Shown: positions 1 through 31,383 of the stretch, piece after piece
Layout: each line of letters begins with the position of its first letter
Numbering within the stretch: the stretch's first letter is position 1
Assembly (NCBI GenBank): GCA_038496445.1
Contig: JALMLS010000289.1
Span: forward strand, 1 to 64,000
Origin: Trichosphaerium sp. ATCC 40318
Taxonomy: Eukaryota > Protista > Tubulinea
Direction: 5' to 3'
Length of the DNA: 64,000 nt
Made by a program: the position numbers and the translations under genes
The notes under the pieces: generated by a model
Told to the model about the DNA's origin: nothing
Databases searched by the model: none
What the model saw: only the letters and a program-made list of their open reading frames with translations

Positions 1-379
1 TTAACCAACTTACTATGGTTGTTGAGGTCATATGCTTTCAAAAAAAATATTTTATGTTTTCTCGTTATTAACTCTTACAGGCTTGCAGCGCTTTGCAAAT
101 GCGCTGGTATAATAACAGGTGGAGCACAGAGAGAAAAGTACGTTAATACAGTTATGTACTCATGAGTGTTTCTAATTCAAAATAGTTGTGCCGCTGCAAG
201 TAGTACTGGTCGCGAAAAGTTGATTTACTCTTCTTATTACATGAAGGTATATTTATTTTTATTCTTCTTTGATTCATTGCTTATGTTTTTTTTAGGAATA
301 TCATAGACCTACGCTTAGAGTAGCCACCAGATGTGAAAGCGATGAATGTGAATACCATAGATCCATATGGGATTGCTAA
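1..379 (+). CDS. 3' end of an unidentified spliced gene (partial, Cys-containing C-terminus)
   Basis: Short exons bounded by GT..AG read ...ACSALQMRWYNNRWSTERK / CAAASSTGREKLIYSSYYMK / EYHRPTLRVATRCESDECEYHRSIWDC* (TAA 377-379). Confidence 0.55.
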
Positions 380-7166: not shown

Positions 7167-7982
7167 TTATTTGACTGAAAAAGTCCACTGTGTACTTCCT
7201 ATGGTTTCAGGCATATTACCAGTATGCTTTAGTGATGAATCATTAAAAACAACAGAGTACATTCCGGCAAGAATATTATCAGAAACCCACACAATCGTTG
7301 GGCGTTTTTGTTTAGTCCACTTTCCTTTACGACTCTCAATACATCCTGGAACGATTTCTCCATGTTCATTCTTTACTATAAAGTCAGTACCAGATACTAT
7401 CTTGTCCAACAAGATCGTAAAAAAGTCATCTCCACCAGGGTACGAGAAACGTTTGAATTGCAAAGATATCTCCACTTGTGACTCATAAGGACAATCAGGT
7501 ATCTCGTGATGCTGTAGTACAGCCTTGCAGTATGGTAGCCTACCGCAGTGCTTACAAACATCCTCAGATCTCTTGTCGTGTCTTGTTGTAGGGCACTTTT
7601 GTTCAAACGTGAAACGTTCGCTGTGAGTATGAATCTTATCCCCAGATGCTCTTGTTTCGTATTTCACTCGTGTGAGGAGTGTTGTAGGAGGTGCTAGGCC
7701 TGCTCCAAGAGCGAAGACGATGAAAACCTCATTCTTCTCACCTGGAACGAAACCAAGCTCTGATACTCTTGCGAGAGGACAAAGCAGTTGTCTTTTGAAT
7801 ACACAACGGTCCAATGAGGAAACGTTAACAGTTTCTATTGTATTGCCGCTGTAAGAAGGGTTTTTAACCAAAATAAGGCGTTTTGCGTATTCCCAGAGCA
7901 TTTCAGGTTGTTTGCTCAACTCCAGGGTTACTTTGTAGCTAGAACCGCTTAAAGCCTTTATAGTGATTGTAATATCAGTCAT
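7167..7982 (-). CDS. Intronless protein with N-terminal ubiquitin-like domain
   Basis: 271-aa ORF. MTDITITIKALSGSSYKVTLE...AKRLI...VFIVFALGAG follows the ubiquitin-fold pattern, ending LGAG where ubiquitin has LRGG. A CxxC (CKHC) follows. Confidence 0.6.
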   Translation of the reverse strand: MTDITITIKALSGSSYKVTLELSKQPEMLWEYAKRLILVKNPSYSGNTIETVNVSSLDRCVFKRQLLCPLARVSELGFVPGEKNEVFIVFALGAGLAPPTTLLTRVKYETRASGDKIHTHSERFTFEQKCPTTRHDKRSEDVCKHCGRLPYCKAVLQHHEIPDCPYESQVEISLQFKRFSYPGGDDFFTILLDKIVSGTDFIVKNEHGEIVPGCIESRKGKWTKQKRPTIVWVSDNILAGMYSVVFNDSSLKHTGNMPETIGSTQWTFSVK

Positions 7983-8226: not shown

Positions 8227-11200
8227 TTAAATCTTCAAAACATCCTGAGCTTTGTTTGTGATAAAAACCTTCTTGTATTTTTTTTTCAAGTAAGCTACCT
8301 TTGCTGTATCTCCTACCAAAGGTTATTTATAAAACCCAAAACAACATGATCAAGTAATTATAAACCACGTACTGCAATAAACAAGAATAGGTGTTTTAGC
8401 ACATGTTTTAATCTTTCTTATACTTTTCACTAACTTTTCTGCTGCAAGCTCATCTCCATCACCCTTACGATAACTGTTTGTGATAATACGTAACCTGTTG
8501 TTACAAAACCCTTTAAACTTTTGAATCCATGCCAAAATCTCAGATGATGACTTCATGCTCAATACCTTTTTTTTGAAGTGTTTTTGTTAAACAGAGCCAC
8601 ATGTCTCAGTTATTTTGTTGAAGTACCTCTGTTTTCTTCTGTCGTTTTCTTAATAGCTCCACTAGCTTCATATTTTCATTTGATAGATTGTTGTCAACCC
8701 ATAATACAAGGCACTTTGCATCTCTGTACTTGAGCTTATATGCCTTCATATTAGCACTGTCTATTGCTTTATAATACACAAGATATCGTGGAAGAATCTA
8801 CTGCCAGTAAACAAGTACTCAAAGAGTGTCGATTTGCAGGTACTTGGTTTTTTGAAAAGACAACAATCTCATTTTGGTCTATTTTGTCATCATAACCGCA
8901 TGGGAATCCATTTGATTTAGTGATAACATAGTGAGAATCGTATCCTTTCTAGAAAATGCTCAGTAGTGAACCATCAATCTACAAGCTGAAGTCTACCAGC
9001 AGTGCTTCTATAGTACCTTGCATTTCTTTCCTAAAAGGCTTTTGGGATCATTCACTACAGGTTTCTCTGTTGCAGGGTATGGGTTTCCCATCATTACCCA
9101 TGATATTAACATGCACGGGTTCGTACTTTGACCCCATTCAGCATATTTCCTCCCTATACCAGTTGTTACACATTTATCAAACAAATTCCTATGTACCACA
9201 ATCAGGGTATTGAGTAAAGTAAATGCCATCACCTATGTCATTATTAGCTAATGTATTTTCATTCAACATCCTGTCCTTACCATAATACCCTGGATCTTTC
9301 TTGTTTGAGTTTTCATGTGGTTCTCTAAAGTTACTACATGCAATCTTATAGCTAGTTTCCTACTCAAGCATAAGTTAGTACAACGCTACTTCCGGATTGA
9401 TTTATTGCATGCCTCTGATGTGCCATGTAATCCAGGTATAAGGTTGATTTGCTCATTTCCAGAAACGTGCATCACATAATTCTTCAAATGATTAAGAGTT
9501 CTTTCTTGTGATTTACTTATACTATCCACTGTGACACTGTCCTTTGAACCTAAAGCAATTAAACAACAAATCCAAATAACAAATGAACATATTGTTTATC
9601 TGGCTCACTTGATTGATCTGATTGAAGTACTTTTTTCACAAAAACTTGGTACTGTTTTTTAAAGTTGGCTTCAAGTTTCGGATTGTCCAAGAATGCAATC
9701 TTTTCTAATTTATAGAAAGATTCGCTTTCTGTTCCCATAAACTTATAAAAAATATTACAAGCCCTCAGGTATTCATCATAACGTTCCTTTTGTCAATATT
9801 TTCAGTGAGAAAGCAAAGATATATATAGGGGTTATACCTTGTTCTTTTCAGTTTTTGTAAGAAAGGTAATCCGTAACCCAGGACAATTCTTAGGTGTACT
9901 CCAGTCGCCTGCTTTTAAGAAATCTTCACCATGCAAGCTACTCCAGAGGTGATGCCTCCCATCTTTCAGCATGGGATAACCTTGTTTCAAATGAGATGTA
10001 GTGATAATATGTTCTATACACGTCAGGTTATATGTGTTGTGTTTTACTATGGTGACACTTACTTGTTTTCTTGCACTGATATGGGCATTTCATAACCTTC
10101 AAAAACTGTCCACTTTGTATTCTAACCGGACATAGTTGAGATGGTACTATATTTAATGGGTTTAAGTAAGGGTCAAGACATTCCTAACAAATAAGCTGTT
10201 AATAAATGTTCTTTCTTTTTCTATTGTTGTACCGTCCATAACCACGGTGCTATGCCTCTAATAACAACTTTGATTGTATTATCAATATAGTACAATACAA
10301 TGAGATTGCCATAAAAATCAGACAGTATGATCAAGTTTGAAAATAAGTGGAACTCTTTGTTTTGGAACTCTATTAATTTTAAGTGTTAGTTTTTGGTGGT
10401 ACAGTTGATGACGTACTTCGCAATCTTCTTTGCAAATCATTAAAGACATCTACTGATAGATCTTGTGATTTGAATTCGAACGCCAAGAACTTTGAATTGT
10501 GTGGCACATGCTCATAGTTAGTAGGAAGCGCCTTAGGATTCATTAATGCTTGTCTTAATAATCGACATACTATTTGTTTATGCTTCTTGTTTATGGCGAC
10601 TGTCTTGATCACCTTTTGTATGACTTTGCTGCCTGTTGTAGGTACATATGATAATAACTTCCACTCTTTTGGTGACTTGGACAAACAAAATACTTGAGGC
10701 GACACAGATGGTTTTTTGTTCTCTTTAGTCTGAACTAACATGATTTTTTGCTCCTTGTTGGTCAATGGAGGCAAGTAAAGCATATCCACTTTAGGCAATA
10801 ATGAGATTATGATGTATCCACCGGTACCGTAAATTGCCTATATGTTGTTATGCTGGCCACAAAAAACAGTTACCTTCTCTTCTTTTGTCAAGCAAACACA
10901 AAACAACATCTGCACTAAGAAGTTCATCACTTGTTTTACTTGACGTGAAGTGCAGTTTGGATACAGCTTAGAGATTCGGGATTTAACCTCTGAATTGGTG
11001 AATACAGCACAATGACTATGACTGTTGCTTTCCATTAATCTATTCAAATGTTCTCTCGGTGCTAAAAAAGCGCTCATGATGCTAGATAGAATAGGAGGAT
11101 GTAAACACACCATATAAGATGACTAAAGAAAGAAATTACTTTGATGTTTGTGAGAAGAAATGTACCTCATCAAACATGATACTACCAATAGAATGAAGGT

Positions 11201-13389
11201 AATTCAAAGCGGCAACCAACTCTATAGGAGCCATTACGCAACTTGGAGGTAGCAACTTCATCACTTGCTTGCTGTGTAAAGTTTTTTCAGAATGAATTGG
11301 CATGCTAGTAAATAAGAACATACATTGATAAGATGTTACCTTTTAGGCTATCTTTGTTGGTGATACTATTCTTCAGTGCTGTTTTTATATCAACGTTCAT
11401 CAATAATACTCGTGGATAATAAGACTTCATAAACTTTGCTTGATTCTCTAGTATTTTGACAAGAGCTTTAACACCTAAGAAAATCTAGCTTAGCGAAAAT
11501 TTCCAAATGTGTGGGCAATACCGTCCAAGCATTGATATTGTACAAGTGATATTCCAGTATACTGTAGGACTTTTTTACTAGTTTCTAGATCGCCTGAGCA
11601 GATGTCCAGTTTGGATCCAAATACAATGACTGAATACAATTTTGAATCTTTTTCATGCAGAACCTTAGATAGAGTATGACACCAGTACTTGAGGTGTGCT
11701 TGCTGTGTTTTAATTGGTAATGATAAGTCAATCTATAAATAGTATTAATTGAACGACTGTGATGACACCATTGACGTACAACAATAATGTAAATGGCAAG
11801 TTGTTTTGTGAAAAAATACTTATGTAACCCTTTATATTCTATCTGGCCGGCAAAGTCCAATACTGTGAATGATATGCCATTGAATCTAAATCATGTTAAA
11901 CCAACGCCAGCACAAAAAAGCTAACTTGAGATTGGAGGTATCAAACCCAATTGTAGAATCAGCTATTGTATCTGTTTCTTTTGCCAATTTCCTCACCAAT
12001 GTTGTCTTTCCTAGTAAATCAATAGAATTTAGTAACATCCAATAGAGTATGTGGTCACCTGAACCTTCATGACCCACAATCATTATTTTTGCTTCAAATT
12101 GGTCAATAAATGTATAGTTGGTATAATTTGCTCCTTCAACAATATGTGGTGTGTTGACGGCAGGTTTGTTAAGGCCATCCCAATACGTTGTTTGGAACTG
12201 TTTAACTGCTAATTCATTCATTTTTAAGGGGATCACACGTGCCCTTGGTAACATACGTGCCAGAGTTGTAACTAAACAATTTTAATAAGTTTGAAATTCC
12301 TAATTAGAAAGTACCCTCGTGCAATGACATTCTAGGATCTTTACGGCTAAGATCATAAACGAATATAATATCAATTAGTCCATTAAAACAGTCTAGATTG
12401 GATATTAAACTTTTTTTTACTTCTATATGTTTGTGTAAATGCATTTGTAATACTATTGATTTCTTACACCCGTTTGGTATTTTAATGCCTTCACCATCTT
12501 TAATTTCAATACACGTTGAGTCTGTAAACATACTGTTGAGCTTTTTATAGTATTCTAAATCCTCAGAATACACTAGTGCTGATATTTCTTTGTATGAATG
12601 CTCATTGGTGGGCACAGATATTATTTTATCTCTGTTTTTAACAAAAGCATCTTGGTCCGGAATTCCAGCTACAGGTCGTATTCTATCATTGGTTTTAATC
12701 TTATTATTAACAAATTCCCCTTTTTGTTTGTGTCCATCTGGCATATACTTCTCTCCAGTGCCATAAGGAATATTATTCAAAAACTGACCTTTGTATTTCG
12801 TGCCATCTTTCCAAAAGAAAACTCCCATACCATTAAACTTATTGAACTTAAACTCTCCTTTATACTTGATACTACCGTTTGGCCAATACATCTCTCCACT
12901 TCCATGAAACTCGTTGTTTACAAAGCTCCCTTTATATTGCAGAGACCCATTTGCACTATACTTCTCTCCTACACCGTGATACTTATTGTTCTCAAGCTCA
13001 CCTGAGTATTTTATTGTACCGTCCGACCAGTACACTTTTCCAGTACTACGCGCTGTAATATTTTCAACTGATATAAGCGTATCATTGTAAACTTCATCTT
13101 GGTTTGATGGCTGGTTGTAGGCGCCTCCAACTTTTGAATTATTCGCTGATTTGGAAGTTCTTTTTAAATCGCTTTGAACAAGACTGTGGACAACGGTCTC
13201 TACTGCGTCAGCGTTTTCACCCCTTTTCTGATTATTTAATTCTTGATAAACGCAGTCTGCGTTATTTCGTATCATATCGCGTAGGAAATGGTTTGATTGT
13301 TGTAACGAAGATAAATCTTGCCATGACAAGTCGTTTCCAACTAAAATACTCAACAGTATCTCTGTAGGTAACGAAAATATGTTAGTCAT
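8227..13389 (-). CDS. Roco-family protein: F-box, MORN repeats, Roc GTPase, COR, PARP-type ADP-ribosyltransferase, receiver-like domain (multi-exon)
   Basis: F-box IFSLPTEILLSIL. MORN repeats YxGxFxNNxxHGxG. Roc KIMIVGHEGSG|KTTL, STIGFD, DFAGQIEYKGLHKYF, GSKLD. COR ALNYLHSIGSI, VCLHP, VFNDLQRRL. PARP LHGTS, DPGYYGDGIYFTQ, KYA, YDSHY, NEIVVF, ILPRYLVYY. Tail LVLWVDNN. The junctions I traced splice in frame; stop TAA 8227-8229. Confidence 0.8.
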
Positions 13390-20298: not shown

Positions 20299-21300
20299 AT
20301 GTTGCCACGTGGTCACTTACGAAAACGACACGAAACTAAAATGCCAAAAACTATAGTGCTGGATCAAGATGAAACATCTTCTTGTAAACATCTTCTCCAT
20401 CTTCCAACAGAAATTCAGAACTATATCTGTTCCTTCAACGTTGAAGCATTCACAAAGTTCCACACACTCTCAAAGAGAGCTGCAGTCAACACACATTTCA
20501 CTGATAATTTACAACGTGTCGGTAAATGGTTGAGATGGTTCAAAACTGGTCAACTTTTAGAACAAAGTTTCTGGTTTGATGATAAACAGATTGGCGAGAA
20601 TAAAGTGTGGTATAAAAACGGCCAAATTGAGTACCATATTGTATGGGTGGATGGTAAACTGCACGGTGAGGCTAGGCAGTGGTATAAACGAGGTCAAATT
20701 GCAATAAGAGCCACGTGGGTTAATGGTAAACAAAATGGCATTACACGTGTGTGGCATAAACGTGGACAGCTTATTTCACAAACCACCTGGGTCAATGGTA
20801 AACAGCATGGTGAAGCAACAGAATGGTACAAAAGAGGACAAATTAGATCGCATACCACGTGGGTTGAAGGAAAAAAAAATGGTGAATTAAAGGAGTGGTT
20901 TAAAAGCGGACGGCTTTTTACACAAGGCATGTTTGTCAATGGTAAACCAAATGGCAAATGGAGAGTGTTCTTTACAAATGGACAACTAAGGTTGCAAGTC
21001 ACAATGGTTAATGGGGAACTAACAGGAGAGATAATACGGTGGTATGCGAATGGTAGACGTAGCAACCAAACCATGTTGTTAAACAGCGAGAAAAACGGTC
21101 TACATAGAGAATGGTACAAAGATGGACAACTTCATATACAAAGTATGTGGGATAATGGTAAGCAACATGGTGAAGAAAAAATTTGGCATGAAAACGGACA
21201 GCTGAACATACATGCAATGTGGGTTAATGGTGGAGTAATTGAGTACAAAGAGTGGAATGAAAATGGACATCTTTTTAGAATGCACAAAGTAAAAAACTAA
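20299..21300 (+). CDS. Intronless F-box-like + MORN-variant (YwqK-type) repeat protein
   Basis: LLHLPTEIQNYICSF followed by about ten 24-aa repeats WYxxGQxxxxxxWVNGKxHG. Confidence 0.85.
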   Translation: MLPRGHLRKRHETKMPKTIVLDQDETSSCKHLLHLPTEIQNYICSFNVEAFTKFHTLSKRAAVNTHFTDNLQRVGKWLRWFKTGQLLEQSFWFDDKQIGENKVWYKNGQIEYHIVWVDGKLHGEARQWYKRGQIAIRATWVNGKQNGITRVWHKRGQLISQTTWVNGKQHGEATEWYKRGQIRSHTTWVEGKKNGELKEWFKSGRLFTQGMFVNGKPNGKWRVFFTNGQLRLQVTMVNGELTGEIIRWYANGRRSNQTMLLNSEKNGLHREWYKDGQLHIQSMWDNGKQHGEEKIWHENGQLNIHAMWVNGGVIEYKEWNENGHLFRMHKVKN

Positions 21301-23426: not shown

Positions 23427-24632
23427 TTATTGTTGATATTCAGCATCAAAGATTTTATCCATGTCAAATACAAGAGAAGGAGAGAAACATCCTTGATCAG
23501 CAGCGATTGATACAATGTATTGGAGAAGCTCTGGAGGTATGTAAGCTTGAATAGCGCGATTGAGACAAAGCATCAAGAAGAACACTTGATCTCTGAAAAC
23601 ACGAGGAAAATGAAGATGTAATCTCGGATGCCATCTGTGCTTAAGTGCAAGCTTCTTCAATTCTTTAAGCTCTTCATCTTGTTTTAGACCATCGATAATT
23701 TCCATACAACTTGTAAGTTCAGAATCTTTGATCAAGGGCGCCTTGATGCTTGCTCCATACATTCTGAGAATAAGTACTTTACTCAACTCTTTTTGTTCAA
23801 GAGCAATATTGAGTGGTGTTGCCATGACTCGTACATTACGAAGTCCTGAGTGGTAGCCGTCTTCACGTGGATCATCAATACCAATAGATGCTTCAGGTTT
23901 AGGTATTTCTACTTGTTCTATGTATTGTTTTCTCAACTCAACATCAGCGCCATGATGTAACAGAAGTAAAAGCGAAAGTGCTTTGTAATTCTCTCCACTT
24001 GACACCAATACACAGTGTAATGCTGTGCTCTTTGTATCCTCCATGTACCCATACTCATTGTCCACACGCTTTCGATTGAATGCATTGGGATCAGCTGAAG
24101 CAGCAAGTAGTATTTGTAATACTCTTGGGTTACTCGAAGCTCTTGTTAAAAGTGTTACTTTTGAGCTACTGTCTGTCCTCATAGTTGATCCCCCAGTTGA
24201 AATCGTGCCGTTAGGATTAGCACCTTTCTGTAGAGCGTATTTGAATAGGTCGTAGAGCTCTTGAGTCGGACTGGCAAAGAGACGGTCGATAATAACCTGG
24301 AAAGCACTTTTTGTAACTCCACGAAGCATCCAGCCACCCTGGGAATAAGTGCTATTTATATCAGCACCATGTTCAAGAAGTAGAGTGATTAATTGATAGT
24401 TTAATTCCTTGTTTGTGGAGGTTTGTACTTTTTCCTTTGTACCAAGCGCTAAGTGAAGCACATTGTAGCTAAACAACGTTAAATTAACTATTTTGTGCCT
24501 GTTATTGTCTTACGCGCAAGAATCCCATCCTTCACTGTCGTCTATTCGTTCGTTGGCGTTAGCTCCTTTTTTTAGCAGCTTTTTTACTTCCTCTATATCG
24601 TTTGAGGCAATAGCTGTTTTTAAAGACGTCAT
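23427..24632 (-). CDS. Ankyrin-repeat protein with C-terminal F-box/SOCS-like motif (2 exons)
   Basis: IEEVKKLLKKGANAN, LLLEHGADIN, TALHCV..LLLHHGADV, TPLNIAL. C-terminus WHPRLHLHFPRVFRDQVFFLMLC...IPPELLQYIVS. Confidence 0.85.
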
Positions 24633-29660: not shown

Positions 29661-29931
29661 CGCAAACAGAAAATATTTACTTCAATAAAACATGTGTAGT
29701 TGAAGACAACCGATGAGCCTTTTGACTAGATCCAAAAACCACCACCATAACTTTTCACCTACAGGGTTTGCACTACATTCTGCGAAATTAGGCGGCATGT
29801 TGTATTTCTTCCAAGTCCGTTCTGTTGGAGGCTTCTTGTACAACATTTTTGCAGAAAATAGCTGCCATTTTTCAGTCAATTGTGGCTCTTCTCAATTTCG
29901 CAAAAAAGTAGTGCAAACCCACAGTCAAACG

Positions 29932-31383
29932 ATGAATGAGGATATCTTTGACACCACAAGCGACAATGGAATTATTTATAAACAATTTGAAGACATGAAT
30001 CTAAAACAGACAACTTTAAGGTTTAATTTGAGCTTTACCACAATACAACTCTCTTACTACTCTACAAGAGGGCTATATGATACTGGTATTACAACACCAA
30101 CGCTCATTCAACGCTCTGTAATTGTACATATCAACGCTGGTGCGTTTGTAGTATTTGTGTATTTGTTGCTCACTTCACAATGCTGTACAGGCACTGATGT
30201 TATTATTACCTCGACTGGTACTTCGACATCTATTGCTTATATTGTTGGTGTTATAAATCAGATTGATTCATCTCAAAACGTGCTTCAAGGTGTTATTCTA
30301 GTTGAAGAAGACAACATTGCAAGCCACGTTTATAGTCTGGTCAACAAAATATCACGTCACACGCCAATAAAAACTCAACTTTTGTTGAACAAATATACAT
30401 CACGTGATACCCAAAAGTCATTCACAAATGCACATGTTATTATTGGTACTCCTTCAATTGTACTATTCGCAATTCCTGTGTGTAATTGTTGTTATTAGTA
30501 TAAGCTCATCATTTTCTGTAGTTTATTGATGTCTCTTCTGTAAAGGTTCTGTGTTTAGATGACTTACTGTCTACAGAAAATTATAAAGACACAATGGAGA
30601 TATACTCAATTCTACCACCGAATATTCAAGTATCTTTGTGCAACGGCTATCCAAATTTAATATACAAAGACTTTTCTAAACGCACAACAAGAAATGCAAT
30701 AGAATCACCAGACTGTCATTACCCTTTTTGCAGTGTACAGAAATATTCATATTGAGTTTCTATTAAATGTCACTGTTTTGACTTTTACCAATAGGATATA
30801 CCACAATATTATATTGATACAAGCATAGATGATTACAAGTTTGATACACTAAAAGATTTATTAGATGAAGTGACATACGACACTATTGTTTTTTGTAACA
30901 ATGACACAAACAGAAGAACAGTATATAACAGCCTCATTAATGATTATGGCCGAGTACTGCTTTAAATAAGCTAATGTTTATATAAATTAATAACAGCACA
31001 TAGGTGAATACAATCAATGACTCTATGGATGAGGAAGAGATGTATCAATCAGTAACGGTAAGTCATGATATCAACATTTACTTTTAACTTTATCTTAGAA
31101 GTTCAATACTGGATATTATTCTGTTATTGTTCTATCCACAAACTTCAAAAGAAGACTCCTTGATATAAGAAATACATCCTTTGTTGTGTTTTATGATATC
31201 CCTCAAACTGCCAAGGAATACTGTAAATGCATTGGAAGATATGGTCGTTTTGATAGAAGGAGATTTTCAGTAGTATTAGTAACAGAAAAGAATATTCATC
31301 AAATGCACTCTATTGAAAATCAAAGTAACAACCGCATATATGATTTTCCTGCTCACTACCCGTTTACTACAAATGAATCTTAA
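29932..31383 (+). CDS. eIF4A-like DEAD-box pseudo-helicase (catalytic motifs degenerate)
   Basis: Q-motif region FEDMNLKQTTLRGLYDTGITTPTLIQ. Motif I changed to TSTGTST; Ia to VEEDNIA; HVIIGTP kept; DEAD to DDLL; IVFCN kept; VI to KCIGRYGRFDRR. Length and domain order match eIF4A; introns splice GT-AG. Confidence 0.8.

Follow-up and report, generated by a model that had tools for sequence, protein, structure and literature searches.

The question raised by this locus is whether a single gene can join the Roc-COR switch of Roco proteins to a PARP-type ADP-ribosyltransferase. The window analysed is a stretch of 64,000 nucleotides (nt) from the protist Trichosphaerium sp. ATCC 40318 (contig JALMLS010000289.1, positions 1 to 64,000), and an earlier note, made from its letters, had proposed a gene of this kind on the minus strand. 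Roco proteins are of interest through LRRK2, and the control that Roc-COR exerts over an attached enzyme is still under debate; leucine-rich repeats (LRRs) are usual in the family but do not define it, and are absent in DAPK1. As argued below, the locus probably holds one intron-rich gene for a 1400-residue Roco-family protein, in which a predicted Roc-COR switch would control a PARP-type transferase (Table 1).

The window has a base composition of about 36% G+C and a eukaryotic look. From 13389 down to 8227 of the minus strand, open stretches in three frames follow one another, separated by short gaps bounded by GT and AG. A hand-curated splice model joins them into 21 exons with 20 GT-AG introns between them (36-68 nt long, median 47), which gives 1400 codons and a TAA. 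Its ATG at 13389 and its stop at 8229-8227 coincide exactly with the ends, and its strand with the strand, that had been claimed for the gene. Donors are mainly GTA (mostly GTAC or GTAA), acceptors mainly TAG, and for 18 of the 20 introns retention would disrupt the frame or bring in a stop. Intron 15 (9280-9233, 48 nt, GTAAGG...ATAG) is in frame, and its removal yields YYGDGIYF. Codon usage prefers the frame of the model in every one of the 21 exons, a weak test because the other frames contain stops. More telling is the effect of joining the exons on profile scores: when the whole window was scanned in six frames, unspliced fragments reached at best 9.6 and 8.9 bits with Roc and 4.7 bits with PARP, whereas the spliced protein scores 69.3 bits for Roc-COR and 21 bits for PARP, about seven-fold and more than four-fold above any unspliced fragment. 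The matches are therefore collinear and additive, and the same scan found no second Roc or PARP gene elsewhere in the window. Automatic splice models were discarded, one based on codon log-odds halting after two exons and a length-maximising variant taking wrong frames in Roc and PARP. Introns 9389-9352 and 10416-10370 of the minus strand carry the yeast-like branch-point sequences TACTAAC and ACTAAC, a possible aid for training a splice model of this genome.

The Roc-COR part was assessed with a profile of prokaryotic relatives. When prokaryotic genomes were scanned for WDFGGQE, the switch II motif, 70 long open frames were obtained that have a P-loop upstream, and a Pfam check of 30 of these seeds found Roc and COR-A in all 30 and COR-B in 26. 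The local hidden Markov model (HMM) built from the 70 proteins matched residues 416-649 of the predicted protein (E value 3e-20), the best of 2000 shuffled sequences reaching 6.4 bits, and hhalign against the Roc-COR profile returned a probability of 99.2 (E 1.1e-19). This alignment runs unbroken through the P-loop, DFAGQ, SKLD and COR-A up to YIIISLLP at residue 749, opposite 'yliP.lLP' at template column 322. Single exon pieces matched Roc (5.2e-4) and Arf (0.013) in Pfam. Roc and COR-A of the earlier proposal are thus strongly supported, and COR-B did not reach significance: a second, collinear hhalign match over residues 846-918 has a probability of 0.4, and a COR-B HMM found nothing, as set out below. 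The WDFGGQE motif itself is present in many cyanobacteria, Bacteroidota and Chloroflexota and in several metagenome-assembled genomes of Asgard archaea (Promethearchaeota, Hodarchaeum, Thorarchaeota and Hermodarchaeota).

For the transferase, viral contigs (IMG/VR) were scanned for FGxGIYFA, and 65 of the 121 open frames obtained have HG[STA] upstream and an acidic strand downstream as well. Nineteen diverse seeds form alignment A1, with PF00644 recognised by Pfam in 19 of 19 (best E 6e-50). Against the first splice model only the domain's C-terminal half matched the PARP profile (19.5 bits, hhalign probability 94.2), and with the refined model A1 aligns by hhalign with residues 1117-1261 (probability 95.0, E 3.6e-8, 126 columns, about 22% identity). 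The proposed H-Y-E triad is borne out by this alignment, since the His of LHGT (H1123), the Tyr of GIYF (Y1163) and the Glu of NEIVV (E1243) all fall on invariant columns (H284, Y322 and E417). A local PARP HMM gave 21.0 bits for the full protein and 25.7 bits for the domain alone, as compared to at most 10.9 and 6.5 bits in shuffled sequences (2000 for the domain). Because the seeds had been picked by their GIYF motif, this motif was masked in the query, and the masked domain still scored 18.0 bits, where 2000 shuffles reached 6.5 at most, and its hhalign E value was 7.3e-5, where 40 shuffled queries reached 0.006 at best. Residues 1018-1116 lie outside the PARP1-like profile and were assigned by their likeness to the usual start of a PARP domain. 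Single exons found no PARP or COR match in Pfam and no sequence match in the PDB, and the evidence for the PARP domain hangs for this reason on the splice model; an ESM Atlas search with one PARP exon was uninformative. The earlier note had considered that PARP profiles might fail to match; the locally built profile did match, and Pfam on single exons did not.

Two or three adjacent genes, one for an F-box/MORN protein (exon 1), one for Roc-COR and one for PARP plus the C-terminal domain, might look fused in such a model. Exon 1 to exon 2 is the weakest junction: if exon 1 is read past its donor, a TAA just beyond closes the frame after 361 codons, which would give an F-box/MORN protein, and 50 nt beyond this end, at 12254, an open frame starts with an ATG. 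The donor of intron 12, read through, likewise meets a stop after one codon. However, stops or frame breaks follow read-through at 18 of the 20 introns, so that those of exon 1 and intron 12 are not special, and the implied gaps between separate genes would be just 50 and about 90 nt, whereas the true intergenic gap downstream, from 8227 to an ATG at 7982, has 245 nt. All junctions share the same style of short GT-AG intron, and the chain of frames runs without a break from 13389 to 8227 over 20 canonical ones. Moreover, the open stretch of exon 13 begins two codons upstream of 9786, right after a stop and with no in-frame ATG before it; as the PARP domain, by the presumed position of its start, seems to begin upstream of the only ATG of this exon, exon 13 would not be a first coding exon that holds the whole domain. 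Separate genes are accordingly considered improbable.

The locus could also be a decaying, non-functional copy, or its PARP domain a pseudo-enzyme, as the undetectable COR-B, an atypical G4 motif and a His-to-Tyr spacing of 40 residues, seemingly longer than in typical PARPs, might indicate. Against this stand 4.2 kb of coding sequence in 21 exons with zero in-frame stops or frameshifts and with canonical splice sites throughout, together with the intact P-loop, switch II and H-Y-E residues, and this alternative is regarded as highly improbable. Activity of the predicted protein is plausible because its nucleotide-binding and catalytic residues are intact.

Ahead of the predicted Roc-COR-PARP core, the MORN repeats that had been proposed were recovered in exon 1 by Pfam MORN (1.7e-15, 56.3 bits, cut-off 22.5) and MORN_2 (5.3e-5). 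An AlphaFold2 (AF2) model of this exon, computed without an alignment and of low overall confidence (predicted local distance difference test, pLDDT, of 38.9) apart from the MORN hairpins, shows paired strands and beta-hairpins at residues 115-232 with pLDDT values of 50-75. Pfam matched MORN and F-box-like in exon 1, and LRR was not matched. The F-box that had been proposed at the N-terminus is tentative, its Pfam F-box-like match of 15.4 bits (E 0.016) being under the cut-off of 24.3; no PDB sequence matched this segment, for which AF2 gives helices at low confidence. Residues 233-415 have no Pfam match, no match to the N-terminal parts of bacterial Roco proteins and AF2 pLDDT values below 35, and a pseudo-GTPase in this region found no support (hhalign against Roc-COR, probability 0.1).

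At the other end, exon 19 (8797-8627) is shared by the last strand of PARP and the first of a C-terminal domain with the motifs LVLWVDNN, RIITN, PILVYC and KVFITN in this order. The exons of this domain have no match in Pfam or to the tails of bacterial Roco proteins. Its WVDNN motif had been taken for that of a receiver-like domain, a suggestion that found no support: hhalign gave a probability of 0.2 against a small profile of seven receiver seeds that were not Pfam-checked, and the HMM score ranked 104th among 1000 shuffles. After the third hydrophobic strand (strands placed by hand) there is T-N, and not the phospho-acceptor Asp of receivers. A TIR-like C-terminal domain found no support either. 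The order claimed for the protein holds for MORN, Roc, COR-A and PARP, all seen by profiles, with Roc-COR followed by a PARP domain with intact H-Y-E in one frame chain, MORN repeats and not LRRs ahead of it, and no kinase or death domain.

Table 1. Predicted features of the Roco-PARP gene, in positions of the window; residues are those of the spliced protein.
Feature	Residues	Position	Strand	Basis
Whole predicted gene, exons 1-11		13389-12315; 12271-12059; 12010-11926; 11885-11780; 11732-11522; 11474-11324; 11271-11166; 11122-10874; 10837-10417; 10369-10233; 10183-10063	(-)	hand-curated
Whole predicted gene, exons 12-21		10013-9838; 9786-9581; 9536-9390; 9351-9281; 9232-9197; 9153-9017; 8948-8844; 8797-8627; 8565-8373; 8312-8227	(-)	hand-curated
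F-box-like N-terminus, LPxEIL motif (tentative)	5-43	13261..13377	(-)	Pfam F-box-like below cut-off
About five MORN repeats	115-232	12694..13047	(-)	Pfam MORN, MORN_2; AF2 hairpins
Region between MORN and Roc, spans intron 1	233-415	12102..12693	(-)	position
Roc GTPase domain	416-575	11440..12101	(-)	Roc-COR HMM, hhalign, Pfam Roc on exon piece
G1 GHEGSGKT, codon of K431	431	12008-12006	(-)	P-loop split by 48-nt intron
G3 DFAGQ, codon of D468	468	11857-11855	(-)	motif
G4 variant SKLD, codon of D536	536	11606-11604	(-)	motif
COR-A, LNYLHSIG and YIIISLLP motifs	576-749	10787..11439	(-)	same hhalign alignment as Roc
COR-B-like region and Cys-containing linker	750-1017	9838..10786	(-)	position only
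PARP-type ADP-ribosyltransferase domain, exons 13-19	1018-1262	8765..9786	(-)	hhalign over 1117-1261
Codon of H1123 (LHGT)	1123	9427-9425	(-)	alignment A1 column H284
Codon of Y1163 (GIYF)	1163	9221-9219	(-)	alignment A1 column Y322
Codon of second Tyr, Y1174	1174	9145-9143	(-)	PARP domain
Codon of E1243 (NEIVV)	1243	8870-8868	(-)	alignment A1 column E417
C-terminal domain, about 138 residues	1263-1400	8230..8764	(-)	alternating strand/helix pattern

An exhaustive protein search with exon 1 retrieved 31,218 MORN-type matches, all generic MORN proteins, with no orthologue among them and neither a Roc nor a PARP domain in any of them. Some of the best MORN matches are long proteins that carry, besides MORN arrays, a kinase plus STAND-type NTPase (NB-ARC/nSTAND) or else AAA ATPases, and MORN arrays beside NTPase switches therefore occur elsewhere. 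Neither a word-indexed protein search with exons 9 and 20, nor exon 20 as query in viral contigs, nor exons 9 and 19 as queries in metagenomes yielded a relative, and the viral PARP alignment used as query against the protein collection returned only phage and bacterial WGR-PARP proteins. Looking for Roc-COR-PARP architectures elsewhere, as the earlier note had advised, gave none: no PARP match occurs in the 120 prokaryotic Roc loci, no Roc in the viral PARP loci, and the combination is absent from the published tables discussed below. This absence of relatives is weak evidence because the queries were exon-sized or limited to near-identical peptides.

Several points weigh against a single gene with a working Roc-COR-PARP chain. 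The splice model was made by hand from a three-frame reading of the sequence alone, with one later refinement, intron 15, which was taken into the model because the PARP alignment improves without it. Junctions are uncertain across introns 13-15, among them those of intron 13 and the acceptor site of intron 14. Pfam, PDB and the other remote searches used single exons, the spliced protein being scored with locally built profiles only. Within the switch, the G4 motif is SKLD and not NKxD, and an HMM for COR-B, the usual dimerisation part, detected no domain in the model (best shuffle 11.1 bits). Finally, as no orthologue or paralogue was retrieved, the fusion has no support from conservation.

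How far such a protein departs from known ones can be judged from three published sources. A review of Roco proteins (PMC6337361) recognises three groups, LRR-Roc-COR proteins, LRR-Roc-COR-kinase proteins with extra domains, and DAPK1, and nowhere mentions ADP-ribosylation, and a survey published in 2010 on PARPs of eukaryotes (PMC2964712) names Roc, GTPase, MORN and F-box nowhere as partners. Closer in layout are the prokaryotic LRR + AP-GTPase (Roc) + COR proteins described by Kaur, Iyer, Burroughs and Aravind (2021, eLife 10:e70394, PMC8195603), in which one of at least 24 different predicted effector domains, such as TIR, caspase, trypsin and GT4, occupies the C-terminal position, and which these authors predict to be counter-invader systems. 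Their supplementary tables list 'COR+TIR' 581 times and 'COR+PARP', 'COR+ART' and 'COR+Macro' 0 times. Among the bacterial Roc-COR seeds of this work, a ThsB-like TIR domain follows COR in 7 of the 30 that were checked with Pfam, and PADLOC recognised the TIR part alone. The predicted protein shares with these bacterial ones an N-terminal repeat array, a central Roc-COR switch and a C-terminal enzymatic effector, and TIR, the commonest bacterial effector, also uses NAD+. In contrast, the gene of the window is eukaryotic and intron-rich, has MORN instead of LRR and a PARP-type effector, and adds an F-box-like N-terminus and a C-terminal domain.

Among eukaryotic Roco proteins, LRRK1, LRRK2 and the Dictyostelium Roco kinases (second group in PMC6337361) also have a Roc-COR followed by a catalytic output and preceded by repeats for protein interaction. 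Their output is a kinase and that of the window protein an ADP-ribosyltransferase, and LRR, ankyrin, armadillo and WD40 were undetected in the latter, with a COR-B that cannot be detected by sequence. DAPK1 and the sponge or brachiopod proteins with AP-GTPase, COR and death-fold domains, some with a caspase (PMC6337361; supplement of PMC8195603, which includes sponge AP-GTPase + COR + DED + TRADD-N + caspase proteins), are other cases of eukaryotic Roc-COR outside the LRR-kinase layout, coupled to modules of cell death or immunity; the window protein has no detected death-fold, TRADD-N or caspase, but PARP instead. Phage and bacterial WGR-PARP proteins share a homologous catalytic core whose H, Y and E align with those of the window domain, but are PARP1-like proteins of about 400 residues with WGR and sometimes PARP regulatory domains. 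The viral-contig seeds used here are of about 400-440 residues, 9 of the 19 have a WGR domain, and close relatives are found in bacteria such as Paenibacillus. Tankyrases consist of ankyrin repeats, SAM and PARP; they similarly join a repeat recognition module to an H-Y-E PARP catalytic domain, but have no NTPase switch, whereas the window protein has MORN in place of ankyrin and Roc-COR in between. The scheme of a repeat sensor, a Roc-COR switch and an NAD+-using effector is thus already known as a prediction for bacteria. As far as checked, in PMC6337361, PMC2964712 and PMC8195603, a MORN sensor and a PARP effector on a eukaryotic Roc-COR are apparently undescribed.

The predicted protein would run from an F-box-like N-terminus through about five MORN repeats, a region of 180 residues, Roc, COR and the H-Y-E PARP-type domain to a small alpha/beta domain. 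If the analogy with characterised Roco proteins holds, Roc-COR would act as a nucleotide-dependent switch, linked to dimerisation, over the C-terminal enzyme, which would transfer ADP-ribose from NAD+ in place of phosphorylating, and the MORN array may recognise a target or a membrane. From these features we infer a single transcript, gating of the transferase by GTP, an active protein and a possible role in defence or conflict. A connection with SCF ubiquitin ligases would depend on the sub-threshold F-box match, and the role in defence or conflict is suggested by the layout alone.

The sensor-switch-effector layout that had been put forward for the protein is reasonable, its order of MORN, Roc-COR and PARP fitting the predictions of PMC8195603 and the TIR domains after COR in the bacterial seeds. 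In its most extended form, the proposal would be a eukaryotic family of Roc-COR receptors resembling the NLR type (nucleotide-binding proteins with leucine-rich repeats), a counterpart of bacterial Roc-COR-TIR, in which MORN repeats sense a pathogen or danger, GTP-dependent dimerisation switches on the PARP effector for ADP-ribosylation or NAD+ depletion, and the F-box leads to SCF-dependent turnover; this whole chain is rather unlikely. The same gene with the same architecture could equally encode an ordinary signalling Roco, engaged in cytoskeleton, membrane traffic or chemotaxis and not an immune-type receptor, with MORN repeats anchoring it to a membrane or to lipid and ADP-ribosylation acting as a regulatory modification. 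The characterised Dictyostelium and animal Roco proteins do work in signalling and trafficking (PMC6337361), and MORN repeats are frequent in non-immune proteins; yet a repeat array with an NTPase switch and an NAD+-using enzyme is the layout predicted for conflict systems (PMC8195603), and this explanation can be regarded as possible, though not as a likely one.

If the single-gene reading is true, a natural Roco with an ADP-ribosyltransferase output would offer an independent and easy read-out of Roc-COR switching, through NAD+ consumption or auto-modification. The scheme of sensor, switch and NAD+ effector, predicted for bacterial Roc-COR-TIR, would extend to a eukaryote with a PARP effector. 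Even as an ordinary signalling protein, it would still be a regulated type of PARP without counterpart in PMC6337361, PMC2964712 and PMC8195603.

The window holds other open frames besides the Roco-PARP gene. On the plus strand, 7 kb away from it, a frame of 333 residues at 20299-21297 is made of MORN_2 repeats (Pfam 1.2e-31), and the six-frame scan showed neither Roc nor PARP signals in its surroundings. On the minus strand, 23430-24476 encodes 349 residues with ankyrin repeats (Pfam Ank 4.5e-9); the same scan of the window, this frame included, gave no PARP signal outside the Roco-PARP gene. A single-exon frame of 271 residues (7167-7982, minus strand) lies 245 nt downstream of the stop of the Roco-PARP gene and belongs to no Pfam family. 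Finally, the plus-strand frame 29713-30495 shows a match to DEAD-box helicases, in their N-terminal part (Pfam 1.2e-5), and its look-alikes in the Atlas are eukaryotic helicases from many phyla.

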